Sequence record: MK250019.1
Strand: one strand, 5' to 3'
Length of the DNA: 64,000 bases
The position numbers and the translations under genes were made by a program. Positions 26,201-62,524 of this stretch are shown here, piece after piece; positions within the stretch are counted from its first letter, which is position 1; each line of letters starts with the position of its first letter. The notes beneath the pieces were generated by a model. It made no database searches. It was not told where the DNA came from and saw nothing but the letters and a program-made list of their open reading frames with translations.

Positions 26201-26236
26201 AATACAAAGATACACATTTATTTTTAAATATAAAAA
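26201..26236 (-). promoter_or_regulatory. Bacteroidota-type (host RNAP) promoter, class I
   Basis: Minus strand TTTTTATATTT-N-TGTATCTTTGTATT contains the TAnnTTTG -7 consensus; one of six copies sharing an exact 14-mer. Confidence 0.8.
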
Positions 26237-30544: not shown

Positions 30545-31330
30545 AAAAAGAAAAAATTAAACTTCATAAATTTGCGTTTCAAAAATTTGCTGCTACTTAC
30601 CAAATCTACAAATATGAAGTTTAATCATTTGTATTAATCTATACTGCAGAAAAATTATTATAGTATAAGTTTCATTGTAATTGAACTTTACAACTATAGT
30701 GATAATCCACTTATACCTTCTTTTACTCTAAAGACTTTTATATGCAACTTCGACATATGTAATTTATCTACATACCGTTTACATTAAAGTTACTTTATTT
30801 CATCATGCTTTTATAACCATATTCACAACCCTCTGTATATCACCGATTCATTTCTTTTCATATAGAAATCAGGGTCTTTAAGCCTCACTGTCATTGGCTA
30901 TAACTATTATCCTCAAGCACTACCAGATAAAGTCTTTTTGTTTTTATGGTGCATCTCTCATGCCTCCTTTTATCATAAAACAAACAAAACTAGTAAGACA
31001 AATAACGTTTCTTACAACTCCTACGAATTTAACTCCAAAATTAAGATACATCTCTTAATATTAAGTTGGACACTTAAATTAAGTGGATAAAGTTGTACGA
31101 CTTGAAAATATAATCACCAAAAGAATAATAATATTTTCTCAGACTTTATCATAAACGATTCACTAAATTCTTTTATGGAACTTATTTCTAATTAAATGAG
31201 GACTCATTTAAAATAGGTTCTCCCGAAACATGCGGTTTATCCATACTCATTTAAAACTTTAAATAAGCGTTGTTTATAGCACTCATCAGAATTTATTATG
31301 TATTAACATTTATAACACATCATTTGTATT
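30545..31330 (-). ncRNA. Candidate large structured ncRNA C (about 780 nt), family unidentified
   Basis: No ORF in the track between 30514 and 31501. Many helices, e.g. gataaagtct 30926-35 with agactttatc 31141-50, taaatgag/ctcattta, gtataagt/acttatac. A terminal hairpin aaacttcata...tatgaagttt is followed by a U-tract. Promoters and a boxA-like leader lie upstream. Confidence 0.6.
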
Positions 31331-31346
31331 TAATTATTCTATATAA

Positions 31347-31375
31347 CTTATATAGATATAAACACAAATTGTTTA
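31347..31375 (-). promoter_or_regulatory. Sigma70-like promoter (class II) upstream of ncRNA C
   Basis: TAAACA-N17-TATAAG. Confidence 0.45.
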
Positions 31376-31432
31376 ATAATCTAATAAACAAAATTATTAA
31401 TATTATGTTATCTTAATGTTAATTAAGAAAAA

Positions 31433-31444
31433 ATTTCAAAGAAC
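31433..31444 (-). promoter_or_regulatory. boxA-like antitermination element
   Basis: GTTCTTTGAAAT, identical to 37495-37506; resembles the bacterial rRNA-operon boxA. Confidence 0.5.
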
Positions 31445-31461
31445 ACTTTGTTTTTAATAAC

Positions 31462-31497
31462 AATACAAAGATACACATTATTTTTGAATTAAAAAAA
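31462..31497 (-). promoter_or_regulatory. Bacteroidota-type promoter, class I (points into the ORF-free region)
   Basis: Exact AATACAAAGATACA 14-mer plus the A-tract seen in the other copies. Confidence 0.8.
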
Positions 31498-31522
31498 TAT
31501 ATTGAAGAAAAAATTAATATTT

Positions 31523-32350
31523 TTATTGAACCCATGCAGATGCATATCCATTTTCTACTTTTATAATAAGGACTTCACCATTCAACCATGTATGTTCAAG
31601 ATCATAACCTTCATCTTCACTTTGCATATCTTTATACTTAGTAAGAATAAAGTTTGTAATCTCTTCAATACTTCCCTTATGATATTCAGATGTATTCAAT
31701 AATTTCAAATAATCAACATACTCTCTTGCATTCTTCATACAAGAATCAATATCCTTAAAACATGTAGTATCTATATATTCATTATTTCTATTAATAATAG
31801 ATGCAACAACACCATTAGCTAACAATTTAGAGATATTAGTAATATCCTCAAGTTTTTCGAGTTTTTCAAATTCATATTTTAACATATGTTCTGAATCACT
31901 ATCTCTATAACGTTTAATATTAAGAGTTACTGAATTCCACGTATCTACCCATGTTTTAATTGCATCTTCAATATATCCACCAAAATCATTATCACCAAAT
32001 TCAAAGGTAATCATGAAACTCTTATCAATAATATTATTATCACTAAGTTCATATGGATCACCTTTAAATTTATGTCCTTGATATAAACCATCCAAATAAG
32101 CAGTTGATATAAGATTATTAATATCTGACATTAAAGAAGGCATGAATGTTTCTTTTTTATCTTCTGATATATCATCAAGTACAATAGATGTATCAATAAT
32201 AGCTTCTATATGCTTCTTGTTATCTTTGATATATTGATTTGCAAAATCAACAAACTTCTTTCCGTATACATCAATATTCATCTTATTTACACCCTCTGCT
32301 AAAGTTTCATTAAGATTTTCTAATTCTTTCTTTATATCTACTTTTTCCAT
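31523..32350 (-). CDS. Hypothetical protein (275 aa)
   Basis: Clean ORF. Confidence 0.75.
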   Translation of the reverse strand: MEKVDIKKELENLNETLAEGVNKMNIDVYGKKFVDFANQYIKDNKKHIEAIIDTSIVLDDISEDKKETFMPSLMSDINNLISTAYLDGLYQGHKFKGDPYELSDNNIIDKSFMITFEFGDNDFGGYIEDAIKTWVDTWNSVTLNIKRYRDSDSEHMLKYEFEKLEKLEDITNISKLLANGVVASIINRNNEYIDTTCFKDIDSCMKNAREYVDYLKLLNTSEYHKGSIEEITNFILTKYKDMQSEDEGYDLEHTWLNGEVLIIKVENGYASAWVQ

Positions 32351-32369
32351 AATAAATTTTATTTAAATA

Positions 32370-33305
32370 TTACATTGATCCATCATTTGGCTGCAAACAC
32401 ATAATACCATGTTCTCTCCACATTTTTACTACTTTTGAAGAATCTTCCAAAACAAATAATACATTATAATATGGTTCAATAAATGTTTTATATAGGTTAT
32501 ACTTACAATCTGGGCCCTTTGTAAAATTCTTATATGGTCTCATCATAACCATATCTACATCACCATCCAAATTATTTTTTAACCATGTTTCAGTTGCTTT
32601 TCGTATATCAGGTGTATCTTCTCTACCTGTTAAAATAATAACTTTTACATTATCATCTTTAATATACTTATTAACTAACTTACAAATTTGTTCACATGGT
32701 ACATCATTTGTCATTGTATCAGAAGCGCCATTACCATAAAATGGTCTACCTTGCAAATTAAAACAAAGTGTTGCATCCATATCTACAAGAATACAATCTT
32801 TCTTATCCTTATCATATGGAACAAAACTATTATATTGCTTCTTATTAAGCTCTGTTGCTATAAAATTTCTATATTGACTATATGTTCTCTTAATAACAGA
32901 TTCTCCAATTGGATTTGTTCTCATTGAATCTCGCCTAATACACTCTTCAACTGAAACATCAAAGAAATCTTTAAATACAAGTTCATATTGATATTTAGTA
33001 TGTGTATTATTATAATTATCAATTCTATCCTGCATTTCTTTCCATCCCTTTGGATTAAGGTTCATATTATCCATAATAATATTTAAACCATTTTCCATTG
33101 ATGATTTAAAAAATGCATCAGTCATTTCTTTAATAATGTTTAATTTTTCTCTTTTCTCTACCCAATACTGTCCAAACATATTTCTAAGAGAATCCCAATT
33201 AATTCTAATTCGTTCTGTTGGTTTTTCCTTTGCCCATTGTTCTGCATAAGTTGACTTTCCAGAAGCTTGAATTCCCCTTGTTAATATAATTTCTCTTTTT
33301 TCCAT
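32370..33305 (-). CDS. pseT: Polynucleotide 5'-kinase / 3'-phosphatase (T4 PseT-like)
   Basis: N-terminal P-loop GIQASGKST, DSLRNM, C-terminal HAD motif DMDATL and LED. Confidence 0.9.
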   Translation of the reverse strand: MEKREIILTRGIQASGKSTYAEQWAKEKPTERIRINWDSLRNMFGQYWVEKREKLNIIKEMTDAFFKSSMENGLNIIMDNMNLNPKGWKEMQDRIDNYNNTHTKYQYELVFKDFFDVSVEECIRRDSMRTNPIGESVIKRTYSQYRNFIATELNKKQYNSFVPYDKDKKDCILVDMDATLCFNLQGRPFYGNGASDTMTNDVPCEQICKLVNKYIKDDNVKVIILTGREDTPDIRKATETWLKNNLDGDVDMVMMRPYKNFTKGPDCKYNLYKTFIEPYYNVLFVLEDSSKVVKMWREHGIMCLQPNDGSM

Positions 33306-33323
33306 TATTCTTTTTATTTCTAT

Positions 33324-33863
33324 TTAAAATTCATAACCAATACCAATATACCAATTGTATTTTGTATATGTACCTTGGATATTTACATGATTAATATTAA
33401 ATACTACAGCGGCACCATAATCAAGTCCTTCTACTTTTTCATCGATATTAAACTTATTATGAATACCATTACGGTCACAACTCCAATTATAACCATCTGT
33501 TGTACCAGTTGCATCATATGCATAACCTACCATAGGAATAATTCGCAACCAATTAGTTACAGGAACCTGATAACCAAGATGACATGTTATCGCTTTATCA
33601 TCATCCCAAACATCTACATCTACATCACTTCCATGCATACTAGGCCAACCGCCAAAATCAGCATATACACCTTTAATAGTTGTACTTACCAAAAATTCCT
33701 GTAAACCAAGATCCTGTGAACAACCAATACCTCCAAAATGTATAGCCATATTAAATGTATTATTTGCTTTCTTAAATACATCTTTATATGAATTTTGTGC
33801 CATAACATTATTAACACATACAAATGAAAGCAATACAGTCAGCATTATAATAATTTTCTTCAT
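33324..33863 (-). CDS. Outer-membrane beta-barrel protein
   Basis: Sec signal peptide (..VMA/QN), alternating beta-strand pattern and C-terminal YIGIGYEF BAM-type signal. Confidence 0.8.
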   Translation of the reverse strand: MKKIIIMLTVLLSFVCVNNVMAQNSYKDVFKKANNTFNMAIHFGGIGCSQDLGLQEFLVSTTIKGVYADFGGWPSMHGSDVDVDVWDDDKAITCHLGYQVPVTNWLRIIPMVGYAYDATGTTDGYNWSCDRNGIHNKFNIDEKVEGLDYGAAVVFNINHVNIQGTYTKYNWYIGIGYEF

Positions 33864-33905
33864 AATTTTTATTTTTAATAATTAAACTTATTGTTCTTTA
33901 TTTAC

Positions 33906-33940
33906 AATACAAAGATACATATATTTTTCCTAAATAAAAA
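33906..33940 (-). promoter_or_regulatory. Bacteroidota-type promoter, class I
   Basis: Exact 14-mer copy upstream of the OMP gene. Confidence 0.8.
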
Positions 33941-33967
33941 ACATAAATCTAATTATTTTCCTAAAAA

Positions 33968-34180
33968 TTATTCATTATCCATTGACATCCCTATAGTTGC
34001 ATTTCTCATACAATCTAAATAACCTTTCGTATATAATGATTTCATATGTTCATGTAACTTCTTTAATTTATCCGGTATATCTGTTTCTATATCTTCTGAA
34101 ATTTTATCATCACCAAATAAAGATATAAGTGAAACTCTTGATTTATAATCAGCAATATTTTTTAATTTTTCTATATTCAT
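33968..34180 (-). CDS. Hypothetical protein
   Basis: Clean ORF. Confidence 0.65.
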   Translation of the reverse strand: MNIEKLKNIADYKSRVSLISLFGDDKISEDIETDIPDKLKKLHEHMKSLYTKGYLDCMRNATIGMSMDNE

Positions 34181-34191
34181 ATTTTAAATCA

Positions 34192-34887
34192 TTATAAGTT
34201 AGATAAGACTAAACCTAAACAATATTCGTTATTAATATCACAAATAAATTTATTAAGTTGACCTTTTAACATTTCAGTGTTTATTTCAAATTCTTCTAAT
34301 ATCTCTTTTTCTTTCTTTATAGTATTAATATCTGTTTCTTTCAAATAACTATAAGTATCTTTAGTCTTAAAATTAATATTAGATATTGTATCATTTCTGA
34401 TAGAATTTATAATTAACATTACAGATAACTCATATGTATTTTCATTTAATGCTGAACCATGATAACCACATATACCTTTATTTTTCAGTTCAAAAAATAC
34501 AGGGCCATAACAGTATTTTCCTTCATGTACAATAGTTCCCAATGATTTCAAACCAAATGTCTTACATATATTAAACTTCTTATCAAGATAATCATTAAAT
34601 AATTTATTAATAAACATCATCTGATATGAAATAAAGGTATCAGCATTTAATTCTAATTTAAAATGTGTCTTATCTAAAATATCATACATTAAATCTTGTA
34701 TATTCATATCACCTAATTCTTCTTTATATAAAGATGATAAACACATATATAATCTATGTAATGTTTCTTTAATATCATAATTAATATGAACATTTTTCAA
34801 TTTATTTTCATAATAATTTAGAATTGATTTATTAATTAATGTTGCTGCATTATCAATAAAATATTTTCTATTTTCATCATATGTCAT
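34192..34887 (-). CDS. Hypothetical protein
   Basis: Clean ORF. Confidence 0.7.
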   Translation of the reverse strand: MTYDENRKYFIDNAATLINKSILNYYENKLKNVHINYDIKETLHRLYMCLSSLYKEELGDMNIQDLMYDILDKTHFKLELNADTFISYQMMFINKLFNDYLDKKFNICKTFGLKSLGTIVHEGKYCYGPVFFELKNKGICGYHGSALNENTYELSVMLIINSIRNDTISNINFKTKDTYSYLKETDINTIKKEKEILEEFEINTEMLKGQLNKFICDINNEYCLGLVLSNL

Positions 34888-34900
34888 ATAATTTAAAAAA

Positions 34901-35098
34901 TTATTTTTCTTTCATTCGTCTTAAGATATGTTTAGGTTCTGTATAATAAAAATAATCTTTTGTATTATCATCGATAATATTAAGATTGTATAATGCTTGT
35001 GAAAACCTTATATCTTTATATGTAGTGAGATATTTCTTCAGTATATCTAATATTTCCATATTAGCCTTATATCTCTCAAATGTTTCTTTATCTTCCAT
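34901..35098 (-). CDS. Hypothetical protein
   Basis: Clean ORF containing RFSQAL. Confidence 0.65.
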   Translation of the reverse strand: MEDKETFERYKANMEILDILKKYLTTYKDIRFSQALYNLNIIDDNTKDYFYYTEPKHILRRMKEK

Positions 35099-35140
35099 TT
35101 AAAATAACGGATTAATTTTTATTTCATCTGTTTTAGAATA

Positions 35141-35497
35141 TTAAGTTACATTTAATCTCAATGTTTCATTTAACCATTCTGCAATTAAATGTCTATGACA
35201 AAATTCATCTGGTTTTTCAAAACAACATAATGCGCAGTCATTTCCATTAGATATAAATTTAATTCTATCTACAAATATAGATGGATCTTTAAATAAAGAT
35301 AAAACTTCATTTTTATATCGTTTTCTGAATTCCTGATGATTAGATCTACAGTTATTTAATATATCAGGTGTAGGAGCAATTGCTATTAAATTAGGTCCAT
35401 GAAAATCTTTTGGTGGATAACAGCATATTCCTATTGGAACTATATTATTCTCTTTTAATTTCTTTAGATTTCCAAAATAACTCGTATATATCTTCAT
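35141..35497 (-). CDS. DUF488-like protein
   Basis: IYTSYF, LCCFEKPDEFCHRHLIAEWL. Confidence 0.7.
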   Translation of the reverse strand: MKIYTSYFGNLKKLKENNIVPIGICCYPPKDFHGPNLIAIAPTPDILNNCRSNHQEFRKRYKNEVLSLFKDPSIFVDRIKFISNGNDCALCCFEKPDEFCHRHLIAEWLNETLRLNVT

Positions 35498-35500
35498 ATA

Positions 35501-35716
35501 TTATTTAAAAATATCTTCTAATTTTTTATATTCATCTTTTGATATATCATATTTAACAACTGAAGATGAATGAGCAGAACTCAAAGTATTACAAGTATCT
35601 ATATGGTAAGAATTATCATATCTATCAAGATAAAAACGTACTATACATGAAATATTAATATAACCGGCACTTTTTGTATATATAAATTTTGTCTTATTAT
35701 TCTTCAACTTTATCAT
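35501..35716 (-). CDS. Hypothetical protein
   Basis: Clean ORF. Confidence 0.6.
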   Translation of the reverse strand: MIKLKNNKTKFIYTKSAGYINISCIVRFYLDRYDNSYHIDTCNTLSSAHSSSVVKYDISKDEYKKLEDIFK

Positions 35717-35776
35717 AGTATAAAAACATTATTATATATTTTTTATATAATATTAAATTGATTTTGTTTAATATAA

Positions 35777-36100
35777 ATGGCAGGTTTTGTATATCTTATT
35801 TGTAACCCTGATTAGAATTGTTATAAAATCGGAGTAACAAGGGATTTAGCATAGAAACGATTAAAATAGTTATAGACAGGAAATTCATCAAAATTACATA
35901 TAGTTCATTCTGTATATAGTGAATATCCATTTAGGTTAGAATCTATGTTACATAAAACATTTGATTCAAAACGTTCTGAAGGTGAATGGTTTAATTTAGA
36001 ATAGAAGGATGTAATTAATTTTAAAGATATATGTAATGAAAAAATTAATATTATTAATATTATGAAAGATAATCCATTCTTTAATAAAGATTTAAAATGA
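35777..36100 (+). CDS. T5orf172/MUG113-like GIY-YIG-superfamily protein, 107 aa, 5 in-frame TAG (absent from the ORF track)
   Basis: GFVYLI...YKIGVT...KRLK(TAG)L(TAG)TGN...ESMLHKTF...GEWF; ends at TGA 36098. Confidence 0.88.
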
Positions 36101-36102
36101 AT

Positions 36103-36140
36103 AAAGGTGATATAAGAATTCAATAACTTATATCACCTTT
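36103..36140. terminator. Bidirectional intrinsic terminator
   Basis: 14-bp stem aaaggtgatataag/cttatatcaccttt between convergent genes. Confidence 0.9.
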
Positions 36141-36145
36141 ATTTT

Positions 36146-36412
36146 TTACTTGTTTAATTCTTTATTTAATTCAATCATTTCATCTTCAGGTAATTCATGT
36201 AAATTAATGAAATTATCTATATCTAATAATCCATATTTCAGCATATATGCAATTGTCATTCTTACTGCATAATCTGCTACATCATATGTAGATGCAATTT
36301 CCATATTAGATAAATCTGGATTTTGTAATGTTATTGTTGAAATATTATCTGATAAATCATTAATTGCATCCTTTAATGAATTTATCTGGTTATTTGTTAA
36401 TGTATTACTCAT
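36146..36412 (-). CDS. Hypothetical protein
   Basis: Clean ORF. Confidence 0.7.
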   Translation of the reverse strand: MSNTLTNNQINSLKDAINDLSDNISTITLQNPDLSNMEIASTYDVADYAVRMTIAYMLKYGLLDIDNFINLHELPEDEMIELNKELNK

Positions 36413-36436
36413 TTTATTTTTTATTATAATTTAAAT

Positions 36437-36475
36437 AAAAAAGATGTTATTAAATTGTGAAAATTTAATAACATC
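36437..36475 (-). terminator. Intrinsic terminator closing the ncRNA A/B unit
   Basis: 13-bp stem gatgttattaaat/atttaataacatc followed by a U6 tract on the minus strand. Confidence 0.8.
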
Positions 36476-36529
36476 AAGAACTTATGAAAAACTGCTTAAA
36501 AATATTCTATTCTTTTTATGGAATATGTT

Positions 36530-36945
36530 TTAGATTTTTGTACAAACATAAGGTTCTGCCCCTTATGATTCATTTTAACGTTTGCTCGTTATAATGAATG
36601 TTCATACTGAACTTTGTTATGTCCATGAGGACAAATGGCTGAGAACTTGACCAACACCGACTCTCTATGCTGTAACGTTGGAGTTACATGTTCACACAAC
36701 TCTTATTTCTAAGAGGTAGAGAGCATACCCACGACTTTTGTGAAAAATCGTAAACTCTTACTTGATAGGTTTCATAGAAATTCATTTCATACCAACTTCC
36801 TTGGAAGGATTCAATATGTCCCCACATTTAGCACGATACTACTTTTACTATTCTCATGTCTTTCCTTGCGGTACTCGAATCATGTCTACATATTTCAGTA
36901 GAATAAGGGTATTTTAACCACCAAGTGTCGCACACTTTTGCTTTT
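36530..36945 (-). ncRNA. Candidate structured ncRNA B (about 410 nt), family unidentified
   Basis: About 40% GC in 36601-36720. Nested hairpins include ctctta-GAAA-taagag, cc-GCAA-gg, ctctcta/tagagag, tgtaac/gttaca, cataagg/ccttatg and ctac-TGAAATAT-gtag. No ORF. Confidence 0.7.
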
Positions 36946-37009
36946 GTATAATTTATATACTTAAATAATGTAATCCTAATATTATTATTCTTTATATATT
37001 ATATTTGAT

Positions 37010-37510
37010 TAGACTTGAAAGACGAGGTGCGACCAATAGCATTTCTTCCTTTTGAGAAGAATCCACTAAATCGCCTTTCTGAATTTACATTGCACCATAC
37101 AATCATAATTCTACTCTTATAACTTAACTACATATTTCAGTAGTAATCTTACCATTTCTGAACAAGTTACCAGCTTGCATGGATTATTTGGTTTATAATC
37201 CATATAAGATTCATTATAACAATTAATATCAGCACTGGGAATTGGTATTCCGATCACCGAATATCCATAAACATAAACCTATTGTATTACTACTCACATC
37301 AGTTGTATATTTCACTTCCAATGTATTTGAACTTCATCTCAGAAAGTTTTCCCTTGATTTCCCATTCAAACAGGTTATTTATGTTTGGTTTTCTGTAGAA
37401 TGCTCATTATTCATAAACATCAACCAACATGTCTACTGTTGATTTTTATTACATCACTGCTTTATCCTTAACTCCACCGAAACCATGGATTCATATTTCA
37501 AAGAACTCAT
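37010..37510 (-). ncRNA. Candidate structured ncRNA A (about 500 nt), family unidentified
   Basis: Hairpins atggatta/taatccat, ttcttc/gaagaa, tattc/gaata and ctac-TGAAATAT-gtag. Begins with the boxA-like element, downstream of a promoter. Confidence 0.62.
37495..37506 (-). promoter_or_regulatory. boxA-like antitermination element
   Basis: GTTCTTTGAAAT, identical to 31433-31444. Confidence 0.5.
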
Positions 37511-37546
37511 TTAAAATGAAATAATCTTCAAATTAAATTGTTATTA

Positions 37547-37575
37547 TTTATATAACCTATAATTTAAAAAGTCTA
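37547..37575 (-). promoter_or_regulatory. Sigma70-like promoter (class II) for the ncRNA A/B unit
   Basis: TAGACT-N17-TATAAA, about 40 nt upstream of the boxA-like element. Confidence 0.6.
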
Positions 37576-37764
37576 TATTTTAATCAAAAAATATTTTATT
37601 TTTTTAATTACTTTATTAACTATATGTGTCTTTATCTTCTTTTAATTAATAAAATATGATTTAATTAAAAACTTAATAATTTAGATTATCAATATGTTTC
37701 AAATTTAAATATTATATATGATAATAGAATAATTGTCTATATTTTATAGAAAAAATTTAAAAAA

Positions 37765-38599: not shown

Positions 38600-38960
38600 A
38601 TATATAAATCTATCACAANNNNNNNNNNNNNNNNNNNNNNNNNNNNNNTGTTTTACCAAAAAGTCTACATTTATCTTAATTATTTTTTAATCGGATTAAA
38701 AAATAATTTATAACTAATTAATAATCAATAGATTAAATAAAATATTTTTCATATATATAAATTAATATAAAATAAAAATTCAGATCTAATTATCAAAAAT
38801 TAAATCTGAATTTAACTAATATAAAAAATTTAAATATTATATATAATATCTATCTCAANNNNNNNNNNNNNNNNNNNNNNNNNNNNNNNGTTTTGAGAAA
38901 AAGTCTACATTTTTACAAAATATTTTTAATAAATTCTAAAAATAATTTATAACTAATTGA
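38600..38960. repeat. Degenerate 240-bp-period direct repeat in an extremely AT-rich intergenic region, each copy containing an N-run
   Basis: tctatc(a/t)caa-Ns-ttt...aaaaagtctacattt...aaaaataatttataactaatt occurs at about 38608 and 38848. Confidence 0.65.
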
Positions 38961-60976: not shown

Positions 60977-62524
60977 TTATGCACTTTGTTTTCTATGTTC
61001 AAGAATATGCTTTAATTCTTCATATTCTGTATTAGCTATTTTCTTATCCATTTTTGCTGCTTTTCGCAATGCAAAATAATGTGTAAGAATAGCAGGAACC
61101 ACAGCATTTGGATCTTTTTTATAAACAGCACCCGAACATGTTTTAATTTCATCAGATTTTGGTATATAATTCTCATCTTTAAATAAAAATGATTCTGGAG
61201 AAATCTGGAACTGCCTCATGATACTCGGATATAGGGAAGCGAAATCCAGTCCACCTATGTATTTGAAGATACCGGGTCTAGTAGGCCATACAAAAGCGCC
61301 CTGATAATCTCCATCTGAATTGTCTGTTTTTTTATAAGATTTCTCTGGTATTACTTTATAATTTGGATACACAAAGTTACACATTACGACATGTGTAGGT
61401 TGAATTGTTGAGAATGCAACATTTAATTCAAGTCTGAGTTCACATGCGAGCATATACCAGATTTCAGCAGTTTTTAGGAATTTATCGATATGTTCTACCA
61501 ATATTGTATCGATGCAATTATAAAATACATATTCTTTGAAATGTTCTTCATAGAATTCTTTGAATCCCCAAGGGTGATTAACTTTTTTGATGCCTAATGC
61601 TTTTTCTGCAACGAAGTCAAGTGTATTATTTTCTTTAGGTTGAATTGTCATATCCCATGTTTTATATACGAGTAAGTAGTCATATATAATTTTGTGCATT
61701 GGGACTTTAACATTAATTGTTTTACCTCCAGCGCGTGGTGTAATTTTAAAGTTTGTAAATGTTCTGGTAGGAGATATTCTTTCAATATCAATATTATTGA
61801 TTTTGCATCTATTATAGATATATAACCAGTCGAATCCAAGGAAATTCCAACCAGACATTGCAGTAATTGGTGTGATGAAGTCTATGAAGTCTTCAAGCAT
61901 TTCTCTTTCAGTAGGGAAATATCTGAATTCGAATTTATATCCTTTAGTTATATGGGTACCATTATTTTTTTCTGAATATTGTTCTATTTGTTCTTGAACC
62001 CAAATTTTTTCTTCTTCTGTTAGATTTTTCCTGGACCAAATAATTGTTTGTGGAAATTTGGTCATTGATATTGTATTGATTCTTGTAGATGCTTCTTCTG
62101 GATCAGGAAAACCATCTTCAGAAACTTCTGTTTCAATATCGCACCACCATGTTGGCGGAATATTCATTTCAAATAATGGGTCAACTGCTTTTCCGAATGA
62201 ATTTAGAATTTCATTTATACGAAGTTCTGGAAGTTTATCTACAGGATTTCTTCTAACCCATTTATTATCATATGATTTCCATTGATGCATAACAGGAGTT
62301 CCATCTGGATTGAACTTATATTGTTTTGTTGCAAAATCATATTCTTGAAATGGTTTATCTGCATTTGCTTTATTTGTATATTTCCATTCGAACATTGATT
62401 CTTTAGGAACAGGATATTGTAAAAATTTAACATCTCCTTTTTTATCTACATATGAAACAAGTAATTTCTTAGTAGGTGTTCCATCTGGTAATATAAAATC
62501 TATCTATTCTTTATTAATAATCAT
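60977..62524 (-). CDS. Family B DNA polymerase, N-terminal subunit only (exonuclease and motif A), 515 aa, TAG at codon 7
   Basis: ExoI CDIETE, ExoII GWNFLGFD, ExoIII YNCID, motif A DFASLYPSIM. Ends at TAA shortly after LRKAAK, without motif B or C. Confidence 0.9.

Follow-up and report, generated by a model that had tools for sequence, protein, structure and literature searches.

A probable copy of the host rRNA-operon boxA heads long non-coding RNAs and a tRNA array in Lak phages

Background

Why should two long stretches without open reading frames (ORFs) in the genome of a huge phage begin with the same 12 nucleotides? The phage is Prevotella phage Lak-A2 (MK250019.1; 541,299 bp, circular; from human faeces, Bangladesh), and the stretches lie in a 64,000-nucleotide portion of its genome, record positions 62001–126000, which we refer to as the window (subtracting 62,000 from a record position gives the window position). 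A prediction made from the letters of the window held that the repeated 12-mer, GTTCTTTGAAAT, resembles the boxA of bacterial ribosomal RNA (rRNA) leaders, and that the phage transcribes two long non-coding RNAs (ncRNAs) through the host rRNA antitermination complex. We find that the 12-mer is probably a phage copy of the boxA of host rRNA (rrn) operons, the signal that would load NusB and S10 (NusE) onto RNA polymerase.

Nus antitermination that depends on boxA is known for rRNA operons, for phage lambda together with its N protein, and for a few host loci. Lak phages are uncultivated. According to the authors who described them, large intergenic regions (up to 1.5 kb) rank among the most expressed parts of the genomes and TAG is read as glutamine; they mention neither boxA nor antitermination.

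Results and discussion

Two copies of the element in the window

The 12-mer is present twice in the window, at 31444–31433 and 37506–37495, both times on the minus strand (the plus strand reads ATTTCAAAGAAC). There is no further exact copy in the 64 kb, as originally stated, and the sole copy with one mismatch, ATTCTTTGAAAT at 61531–61542 on the plus strand, is antisense inside an ORF of 515 amino acids. All ORFs around both copies are on the minus strand. Each copy heads an ORF-free stretch of ~0.9–1.1 kb (31432 to ~30545 and 37494 to ~36435), which agrees with the long non-coding RNAs that had been proposed there and that we call ncRNA1 and ncRNA2; downstream of neither copy is there an ORF of at least 50 amino acids, whether translation table 11 is used or TAG is read as glutamine. 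Nothing in the window matched an Rfam family at the gathering thresholds, and ARAGORN found no transfer RNA (tRNA) in it. The only Rfam match at E ≤ 1 between 30000 and 38000, to mir-5 at 36088–36149, was judged to be due to chance.

The element matches the boxA of Prevotellaceae rrn operons

We consider comparison with the host's own rrn operons to be the decisive test of whether the element can be read as a boxA. Prevotellaceae rrn loci were gathered by scanning bacterial genomes for a 16S word. Thirteen leaders were examined first, from Segatella copri (four strains), Prevotella bivia, P. denticola, P. lacticifex, Leyella, Xylanibacter, Segatella cerevisiae, and three Prevotella sp. genomes, two of which are labelled as metagenome-assembled; a wider set was examined in a later pass. 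As the original prediction would have it, all 13 leaders carry an invariant GAGTTCTTTGAAA followed by G or A. This motif lies 108–260 nucleotides before 16S, and in 12 of the leaders it is found 37–57 nucleotides after a TAnnTTTG promoter (102 nucleotides in the other). Nearly all leaders of the wider set likewise have GAGTTCTTTGAAA(G/A). A related motif, GATCTTTGACATATTG (pattern G[A/T]TCTTTGACATATTG), is present in nine of nine 16S–23S spacers and was also confirmed in the wider set. The rrn operons of Escherichia coli likewise have one boxA in their leader and another in their spacer.

The 11-nucleotide phage core, GTTCTTTGAAA, is the leader core of all 13 leaders first examined and of most of the wider set. 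The copy at ncRNA1 is identical to this core at 11 of 11 positions, and at ncRNA2 the match to the host leader extends to GAGTTCTTTGAAA. The core also resembles boxA elements that have been studied in other phyla. It agrees at 10–11 of 11 positions with GAUCUUUGAAA of Bacillus subtilis, where the rrn boxA-like consensus AUGAUCUUUGAAA binds NusB as judged by nuclear magnetic resonance (PMC13753749), and at 10 of 11 positions with the gammaproteobacterial consensus GYTCTTTAANA (PMC5725501). On its own, the 11-mer lacks specificity at a genome size of 4 Mb, with 10–13 copies in each of three host genomes against 6–10 for a reversed control. We found no description of a Bacteroidota boxA in the literature.

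Genome-wide distribution

A 12-mer common to two AT-rich regions is by itself not significant, as shuffling both intergenic regions with dinucleotides preserved gave one or more shared exact 12-mers in 149 of 300 trials. With half of the shuffles giving such a result, the case rests on evidence from the whole genome and from outside it. Counts on the whole Lak-A2 record gave three copies of the exact 12-mer, all non-coding, where 0.035–0.045 would be expected in non-coding sequence. The degenerate pattern G[AT]TCTTTGA[AC]A, searched on both strands, has five matches in the 541 kb, at record positions 93434, 99496, 413376, 418088, and 418198, all on the minus strand and all sense to local transcription. 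Markov models of order 1–3 predict 2.7–3.2 matches per genome, but only 0.2 for its 65 kb of non-coding DNA. No match falls in an ORF, though ORFs of at least 80 amino acids cover 88% of the genome; the motif is accordingly not one that is common in coding sequence.

Both host types of boxA are represented among these copies. Those at 93434, 99496, and 418088 are of the leader type. The copy at 418198, AGTTCTTTGACATATTGA, is of the spacer type and has an 18-nucleotide identity with the spacers of Hallella bergensis and Prevotella ihumii; its 15-nucleotide core, TCTTTGACATATTGA, is expected 0.005–0.01 times per genome.

Four of the five copies head ORF-free stretches, namely ncRNA1, ncRNA2, and two tandem promoters of a tRNA array, while the fifth is located inside that array and directly precedes an ORF of 272 amino acids in Lak-A2. 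Among the 32 ORF-free gaps of at least 450 nucleotides, the motif heads the two longest that lack tRNAs as well as the main tRNA array. The original prediction had placed the motif at the ncRNA loci only. Both of these do carry it, but its range is wider and takes in the tRNA array.

The tRNA-array sites

The tandem boxA promoters (record 418244 and 418130, 110 nucleotides apart), whose boxA sites at 418208–418198 and 418098–418088 were described above, point into the main tRNA array, which extends from 415789 down to 403833 on the same strand. They are followed by ~1 kb of structured non-coding sequence, intron-bearing tRNAs, and endonuclease-like ORFs, and then by the array itself. Record positions 415800–418090 contain tRNA-like halves and intron-interrupted tRNAs that were missed by both ARAGORN and Rfam. 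The array-internal site (413386–413376) lies 72 nucleotides after tRNA-Ile(GAT). Bulk capture of a host rrn spacer was considered and rejected, as the flank of the phage tRNA-Ile and a Segatella copri spacer are alike only in boxA.

The 272-amino-acid ORF after the array-internal site contains 14 TAG codons and has no Pfam match. It is missing at this point in Lak-B2, and may therefore be an insertion. A zinc-ribbon-like ORF of 311 amino acids with nine in-frame TAG codons and a weak match to DUF7487 was also found between 411000 and 421000. These two TAG-rich ORFs are probably insertions of the homing-endonuclease type.

Conservation in Lak and in another huge phage

The motif is kept upstream of homologous ncRNAs in Lak-A1, a Lak-C1-like sequence, Lak-B, and six Lak contigs from IMG/VR, among flanks that are diverged or rearranged; a lack of such conservation would have counted against the original prediction. 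Lak-B and Lak-A1 were reported by the describers of these phages to share 61–65% identity over an alignment of ~70 kb, which may cover other sequence than the window. In Lak-B all five homologous sites keep the motif (the ncRNA leaders, the tandem promoters, and the site after tRNA-Ile). A complete IMG/VR Lak genome of 553,716 bp has exactly five matches, arranged in the same way and all on a single strand. The ncRNA1 element is conserved in Lak-B3 and the IMG/VR Lak contigs, and Lak-B2 has GATCTTTGAAAT at this site; the ncRNA2 element is invariant in eight Lak sequences. Both ncRNA copies are present in the six IMG/VR contigs, in one of them despite an otherwise replaced ncRNA1 leader. In Lak-A1, an AT-rich insertion of 233 nucleotides separates the putative ncRNA2 promoter from boxA, and boxA stays on the RNA body. 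This insertion (L167:354–586) falls at about window position 37548–37554, and the adjacent putative −10 element becomes a perfect TATAAT.

In a very different uncultured phage of 735 kb, LR756501.1, three copies in sense orientation fall within 3 kb of one another at the tRNA array. One directly follows a −7 element, TAATTTTG, and precedes a tRNA-like gene. Another, after tRNA-Ile(GAT), matches 20 of 21 positions of a Prevotellaceae leader, although this family may not be the host of LR756501. Of the four other matches in this genome, the two examined are in coding sequence. After two of the LR756501 copies at the array comes a small ORF (123 and 131 amino acids, respectively) rather than a tRNA, and boxA may therefore also serve short coding inserts in RNA operons.

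When a host leader was compared by BLAST with a phage collection, most matches were chance matches in coding sequence, and only those to LR756501 and LR756503 were informative. MT837047.1 (7,874 bp, filed as 'Bacteriophage sp.') is 100% identical over 52 nucleotides to the Segatella copri rrn leader; we rejected it as a phage case because the record probably represents a piece of a host rrn operon.

Expression of ncRNA2 and its apparent 5' end

Metatranscriptome contigs, which cannot prove RNA ends, strand, or level, cover ncRNA2 in two runs. In run X1, from wastewater, a contig extends over 36670–37598 at a depth of 66 compared with ~0 for its neighbours, and spans boxA and 92 nucleotides upstream of it. 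In run X15, from animal gut, 36591–37037 has a depth of 440 and 37008–37493 a depth of 228, with neighbours at 7 or less. The abundant X15 species stops at 37493, two nucleotides after the motif, and no contig covers 37494–37600 in that run. RNA libraries from four studies contain words of this leader interval (seven were sampled). Two DNA-like runs show even coverage across the region.

The X15 contig of depth 228 is also joined back on itself: position 37493 is followed by 36983–37037, a step back of 511 nucleotides with four nucleotides shared at the joint. This joint (37493/36983) is absent from the two DNA-like runs. It could reflect a circular RNA of 511 nucleotides, a template switch by reverse transcriptase at a true 5' end, or a tandem duplication in the strain. 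No match to RtcB was found in Lak-A2.

An abundant species that starts two nucleotides after the motif might suggest that the motif is an RNA-processing signal rather than a site for Nus loading, either as one strand of a leader–trailer helix or as a nuclease site that sets the mature 5' end. A consensus fold from RNAalifold is in keeping with this idea, as it pairs the boxA region of ncRNA2 (37509–37498) with TCAAGTTCTCA at 36650–36640, near the end of the second conserved domain, in the manner of an rRNA leader–trailer helix. However, all positions of this helix are invariant, so that covariation lends it no support. The motif is far from any conserved RNA body both at ncRNA1 and at the promoters of the tRNA array, and identity with both host types of boxA is left unexplained. 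We regard a processing signal in place of boxA as improbable. Processing as such is compatible with the boxA reading, since boxA loading and leader processing coexist in rRNA.

Promoters upstream of the motif

The copy at ncRNA1 sits 21 nucleotides downstream of TATCTTTG (31473–31466), an instance of TAnnTTTG, the −7 element of the Bacteroidetes type. It belongs to a promoter block of ~48 nucleotides (a T-run, TTTG or TTTA, ~12 nucleotides, and GTATCTTTGTATTGTWA) with ~47 copies across Lak-A2; a first comparison of the window block with the genome gave 40 additional places. The block usually lies 20–40 nucleotides before a start codon, and in the window it is found at 26213, 31474, 33918, 42182, 45378, and 50497, always on the minus strand. 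It looks like the main class of promoters for host polymerase in this phage (Bacteroidetes −33/−7 type). In 38 of the 47 promoters scored, an ATG opens an ORF of at least 40 amino acids within 150 nucleotides. The motif follows only three of the 47, the window copy and the tandem pair at record 418244 and 418130, at a distance of 21–27 nucleotides from the −7 element, and all three are among the nine promoters that have no ORF within 150 nucleotides (Fisher p = 0.005).

The copy at ncRNA2 has no canonical block upstream. It lies 40 nucleotides downstream of a putative sigma70-like promoter, TAGACT-17-TATAAA (37575–37547). A promoter within ~50 nucleotides upstream had been claimed for both copies; this stands for the first, and for the second only a putative promoter can be named. 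Motifs like it occur at three other Lak-A2 sites, at record 135848 (−), 221313 (−), and 290410 (+), and a scan for sigma70 promoters gave no enrichment over shuffles. The conserved motif to which this promoter belongs, AATATAGAC(T/A)TTTTAA...TATA(T)AAATAAT, can be read as a −35/−10 pair like that of sigma70 and is present in tandem before ncRNA2 (37547–37582 and 37711–37745, minus strand). It could mark promoters that are used by a sigma factor of the phage itself.

The motif might itself be a DNA promoter element. On this view GTTCTTTG would stand for a degenerate −7 element of the Bacteroidetes type (TAnnTTTG), a TTTG ~25 nucleotides upstream would serve as the −33 element, and RNA would start just downstream. 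At both window sites a TTTG is indeed found 25–26 nucleotides upstream of the TTTG of the motif, and the X15 contig end at 37493 is five nucleotides after the latter. However, the TA of the −7 element is missing, though it is invariant in the 47 phage promoters and in the host rrn promoters, and the spacing to the upstream TTTG varies (25, 26, 27, and 31 nucleotides). In the host the motif lies at the distances given above downstream of the rrn promoter, the outlier of 102 nucleotides included, and is found again in the spacer. The X1 contig passes through the motif to 37598, and the leader words are present in the RNA libraries of four studies. A promoter element is thus a quite improbable account of the motif.

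It may also be asked whether abundant RNAs carrying boxA act as decoys, soaking up host NusB–S10 and starving host rRNA synthesis, as a form of host shut-off. In favour of a decoy, the loci are among the most expressed regions of the phage and the sequence is identical to host boxA; in X15, however, the abundant RNA lacks the motif. A genome has no more than five copies, and every one of them heads a transcription unit, so that a signal acting in cis fits better than a sponge, and we think a decoy very improbable. Chance, or a functionless relic of captured host rrn DNA, comes close to negligible: a shared 12-mer does appear in half of the shuffles of two AT-rich regions of 1–1.4 kb and ~3 matches to the degenerate motif are expected over a whole genome, but none of the five copies is in coding sequence or antisense, the five homologous sites are kept between Lak clades of only 61–65% identity (~70-kb alignment) and in a second phage lineage, and similarity to the host ends at the motif and its immediate flank.

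A proposed role for boxA in phage transcription

The host match, the distribution, and the conservation of the motif together support the proposal that the ncRNAs are made by way of the host rRNA antitermination complex, and from these sequence data we infer binding of Nus factors and any effect on termination, elongation, or folding. Lak-A2 has no Pfam match to NusB, NusG-N, or S10, and NusB and Rho domains are present in three Segatella/Prevotella genomes; the phage would therefore depend on host factors. The rRNA antitermination complex of E. coli is Rho-resistant, fast, and acts as an RNA chaperone (PMC13753749, PMC5725501). By analogy, host RNA polymerase would start at a phage promoter and the nascent boxA RNA would bind host NusB–S10. 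Together with NusG, NusA, and accessory factors, this would convert the polymerase to its rRNA-making form, which is fast, resists termination, and chaperones RNA, and the long ribosome-free phage RNAs could be completed and folded. At ncRNA2, the leader that bears boxA may be removed afterwards, as in the maturation of rRNA.

Protection from Rho is the least secure part of this rationale. It had been proposed as part of the reason for the motif, but the Rho argument is weaker than had been assumed, since both RNAs are C-poor. The C/G ratios of the two ncRNAs are 0.57 and 0.68 and there is no bubble in which C exceeds G, so that they are expected to be poor classical Rho substrates. Speed and co-transcriptional folding may for this reason outweigh Rho protection.

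Several further observations weigh against the boxA reading along with this base composition. Other GC-rich non-coding gaps, and a tRNA cluster at 31–35 kb of Lak-A2, are without the motif. The host motif is named boxA only from its position and its likeness to tested boxA elements of other phyla. The RNA evidence consists of contigs, with the limits stated above, and because the X15 RNA starts at 37493 the motif may lie upstream of a start site rather than within a processed leader. No equivalents of boxB or boxC were identified, and local folds do not show boxA as single-stranded. The z-scores of the local folds around each boxA range from −1.2 to +0.9 and are therefore uninformative on its accessibility.

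A more far-reaching picture is speculative, and we hold it to be doubtful as a whole. Lak phages and LR756501 might run a system like an rRNA operon, with tandem promoters, both host-identical types of boxA, a multi-domain transcript, and leader removal, which would capture the host antitermination and chaperone complex for abundant structured RNAs and tRNAs and possibly compete with ribosome synthesis. The first 511 nucleotides of ncRNA2 might also be released as a separate and perhaps circular RNA that starts two nucleotides after boxA.

The predicted ncRNAs and their surroundings

Features of the two ncRNA loci are collected in Table 1. The AT-rich 3' hairpins were read by eye, as the scan for intrinsic terminators misses hairpins of this kind.

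Table 1. Elements of the ncRNA1 and ncRNA2 loci in window coordinates.
Feature	Position	Strand	Remarks
boxA-like element 1, leader type, GTTCTTTGAAAT	31433..31444	-	inside the initial ~30 nt of the predicted ncRNA1 transcription unit
boxA-like element 2, GAGTTCTTTGAAAT	37495..37506	-	abuts the conserved ncRNA2 body
Canonical Lak promoter block	31452..31499	-	TATCTTTG at 31473-31466, T-rich -33 region upstream
Putative proximal ncRNA2 promoter, TAGACT-17-TATAAA	37547..37575	-	inside AATATAGACTTTTTAAATTAT, conserved between Lak-A and Lak-B
Putative distal ncRNA2 promoter, TAGACA-17-TATAAT	37711..37739	-	11/12 to the sigma70 consensus
Predicted ncRNA1 body	30545..31432	-	variable AT-rich leader ~31432-31260, then conserved islands
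ncRNA1 3' end, long AT-rich hairpin and T-run	30624-30557 (hairpin), 30556-30545 (T-run)	-	read from the sequence
ncRNA2 domain 1, conserved, structured	37011..37493	-	compensatory pairs between Lak-A and Lak-B; minimum free energy z-score -1.9
ncRNA2 linker, variable, AT-rich	36944..37010	-	between the two domains; includes 36983, partner in the X15 back-joint
ncRNA2 domain 2	36538..36943	-	almost invariant between Lak-A and Lak-B; minimum free energy z-score -3.2
ncRNA2 3' end, terminator-like hairpin (36475-36443) and T-run	36435..36475	-	helix kept by compensatory changes in Lak-B

ncRNA1 is 80% identical to its counterpart in Lak-B, with islands of 90–98%. Its consensus fold is weak, and the comparison of Lak-A with Lak-B gave no convincing structure. 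ncRNA2 has a column-wise identity of 93% over eight Lak sequences, and 24 of its 314 predicted base pairs have changed on both sides and are still paired. A hairpin of four base pairs (CCAU...GUGG) is found eight nucleotides after the ncRNA2 boxA, with one extra basal pair that covaries; no similar hairpin was seen at the other boxA sites.

Paralogy of the two ncRNAs was rejected, as there is no significant similarity beyond the 3' terminator and the region of the next gene. A 13-mer common to both regions, ATTTTAAATGAGT (31204–31216 and 37507–37519, minus strand), was likewise set aside because it is at chance level and is not conserved in Lak-B; at ncRNA2 it is located immediately 5' of boxA. 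Farther upstream, a run of 93 N at ~38619–38711, either masked or a gap, lies within an AT-rich intergenic stretch.

Relation to known antitermination systems

The phage element has much in common with the boxA of rrn operons, which works through the rRNA antitermination complex (NusB–S10, NusG, NusA, SuhB, and S4). Its 11-nucleotide core is identical to the leader boxA of the host genus, and it apparently occupies the transcribed strand a short way past the promoter of a structured RNA that is not translated. As in rrn operons, there are promoters in tandem, and a further copy follows a tRNA within the unit; as with rRNA, the ncRNA2 leader is apparently removed from the mature RNA. In contrast to rrn boxA, the element is encoded by a phage and heads two unclassified ncRNAs of ~1 kb and a tRNA array rather than rRNA. 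At the canonical phage promoters it is closer to the −7 element than in host rrn leaders (21–27 versus 37–57 nucleotides), and no boxB or boxC partner is recognisable at the phage sites.

At the nut sites of phage lambda (boxA and boxB, with the N protein), a phage boxA RNA and host Nus factors likewise produce a termination-resistant polymerase. The lambda boxA departs from the rrn consensus, needs N protein on the boxB hairpin, and acts on mRNA operons. The Lak element, by contrast, is of the consensus host type, stands before non-coding units, and has no boxB that we could identify, the four-base-pair hairpin after the ncRNA2 boxA being at most a candidate. An N-like protein was not identified either, though no search was aimed at one. 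Recruitment of boxA outside rrn, among others for a long untranslated transcript, is described for suhB and CRISPR (clustered regularly interspaced short palindromic repeat) operons of Gammaproteobacteria (PMC13753749, PMC5725501). These are host loci of Proteobacteria, whereas the Lak sites are ncRNA and tRNA units of a phage in a Bacteroidota system.

Conclusion

The signal, the machinery, and the use of a boxA by lambda are all known. What appears to be new is the use of an unmodified host boxA for non-coding phage units; our literature search found no report of an rrn-type boxA before phage ncRNA or tRNA units. The comparison also defines, from sequence, the leader and spacer boxA of Prevotellaceae. 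It offers a simple rule for locating untranslated transcription units in huge phage genomes, and the type of boxA may serve as a clue to the host phylum. If the proposed role is correct, it would explain by what mechanism the large intergenic regions of Lak phages come to be highly expressed and would represent a new way for a phage to take over the transcription apparatus of its host.

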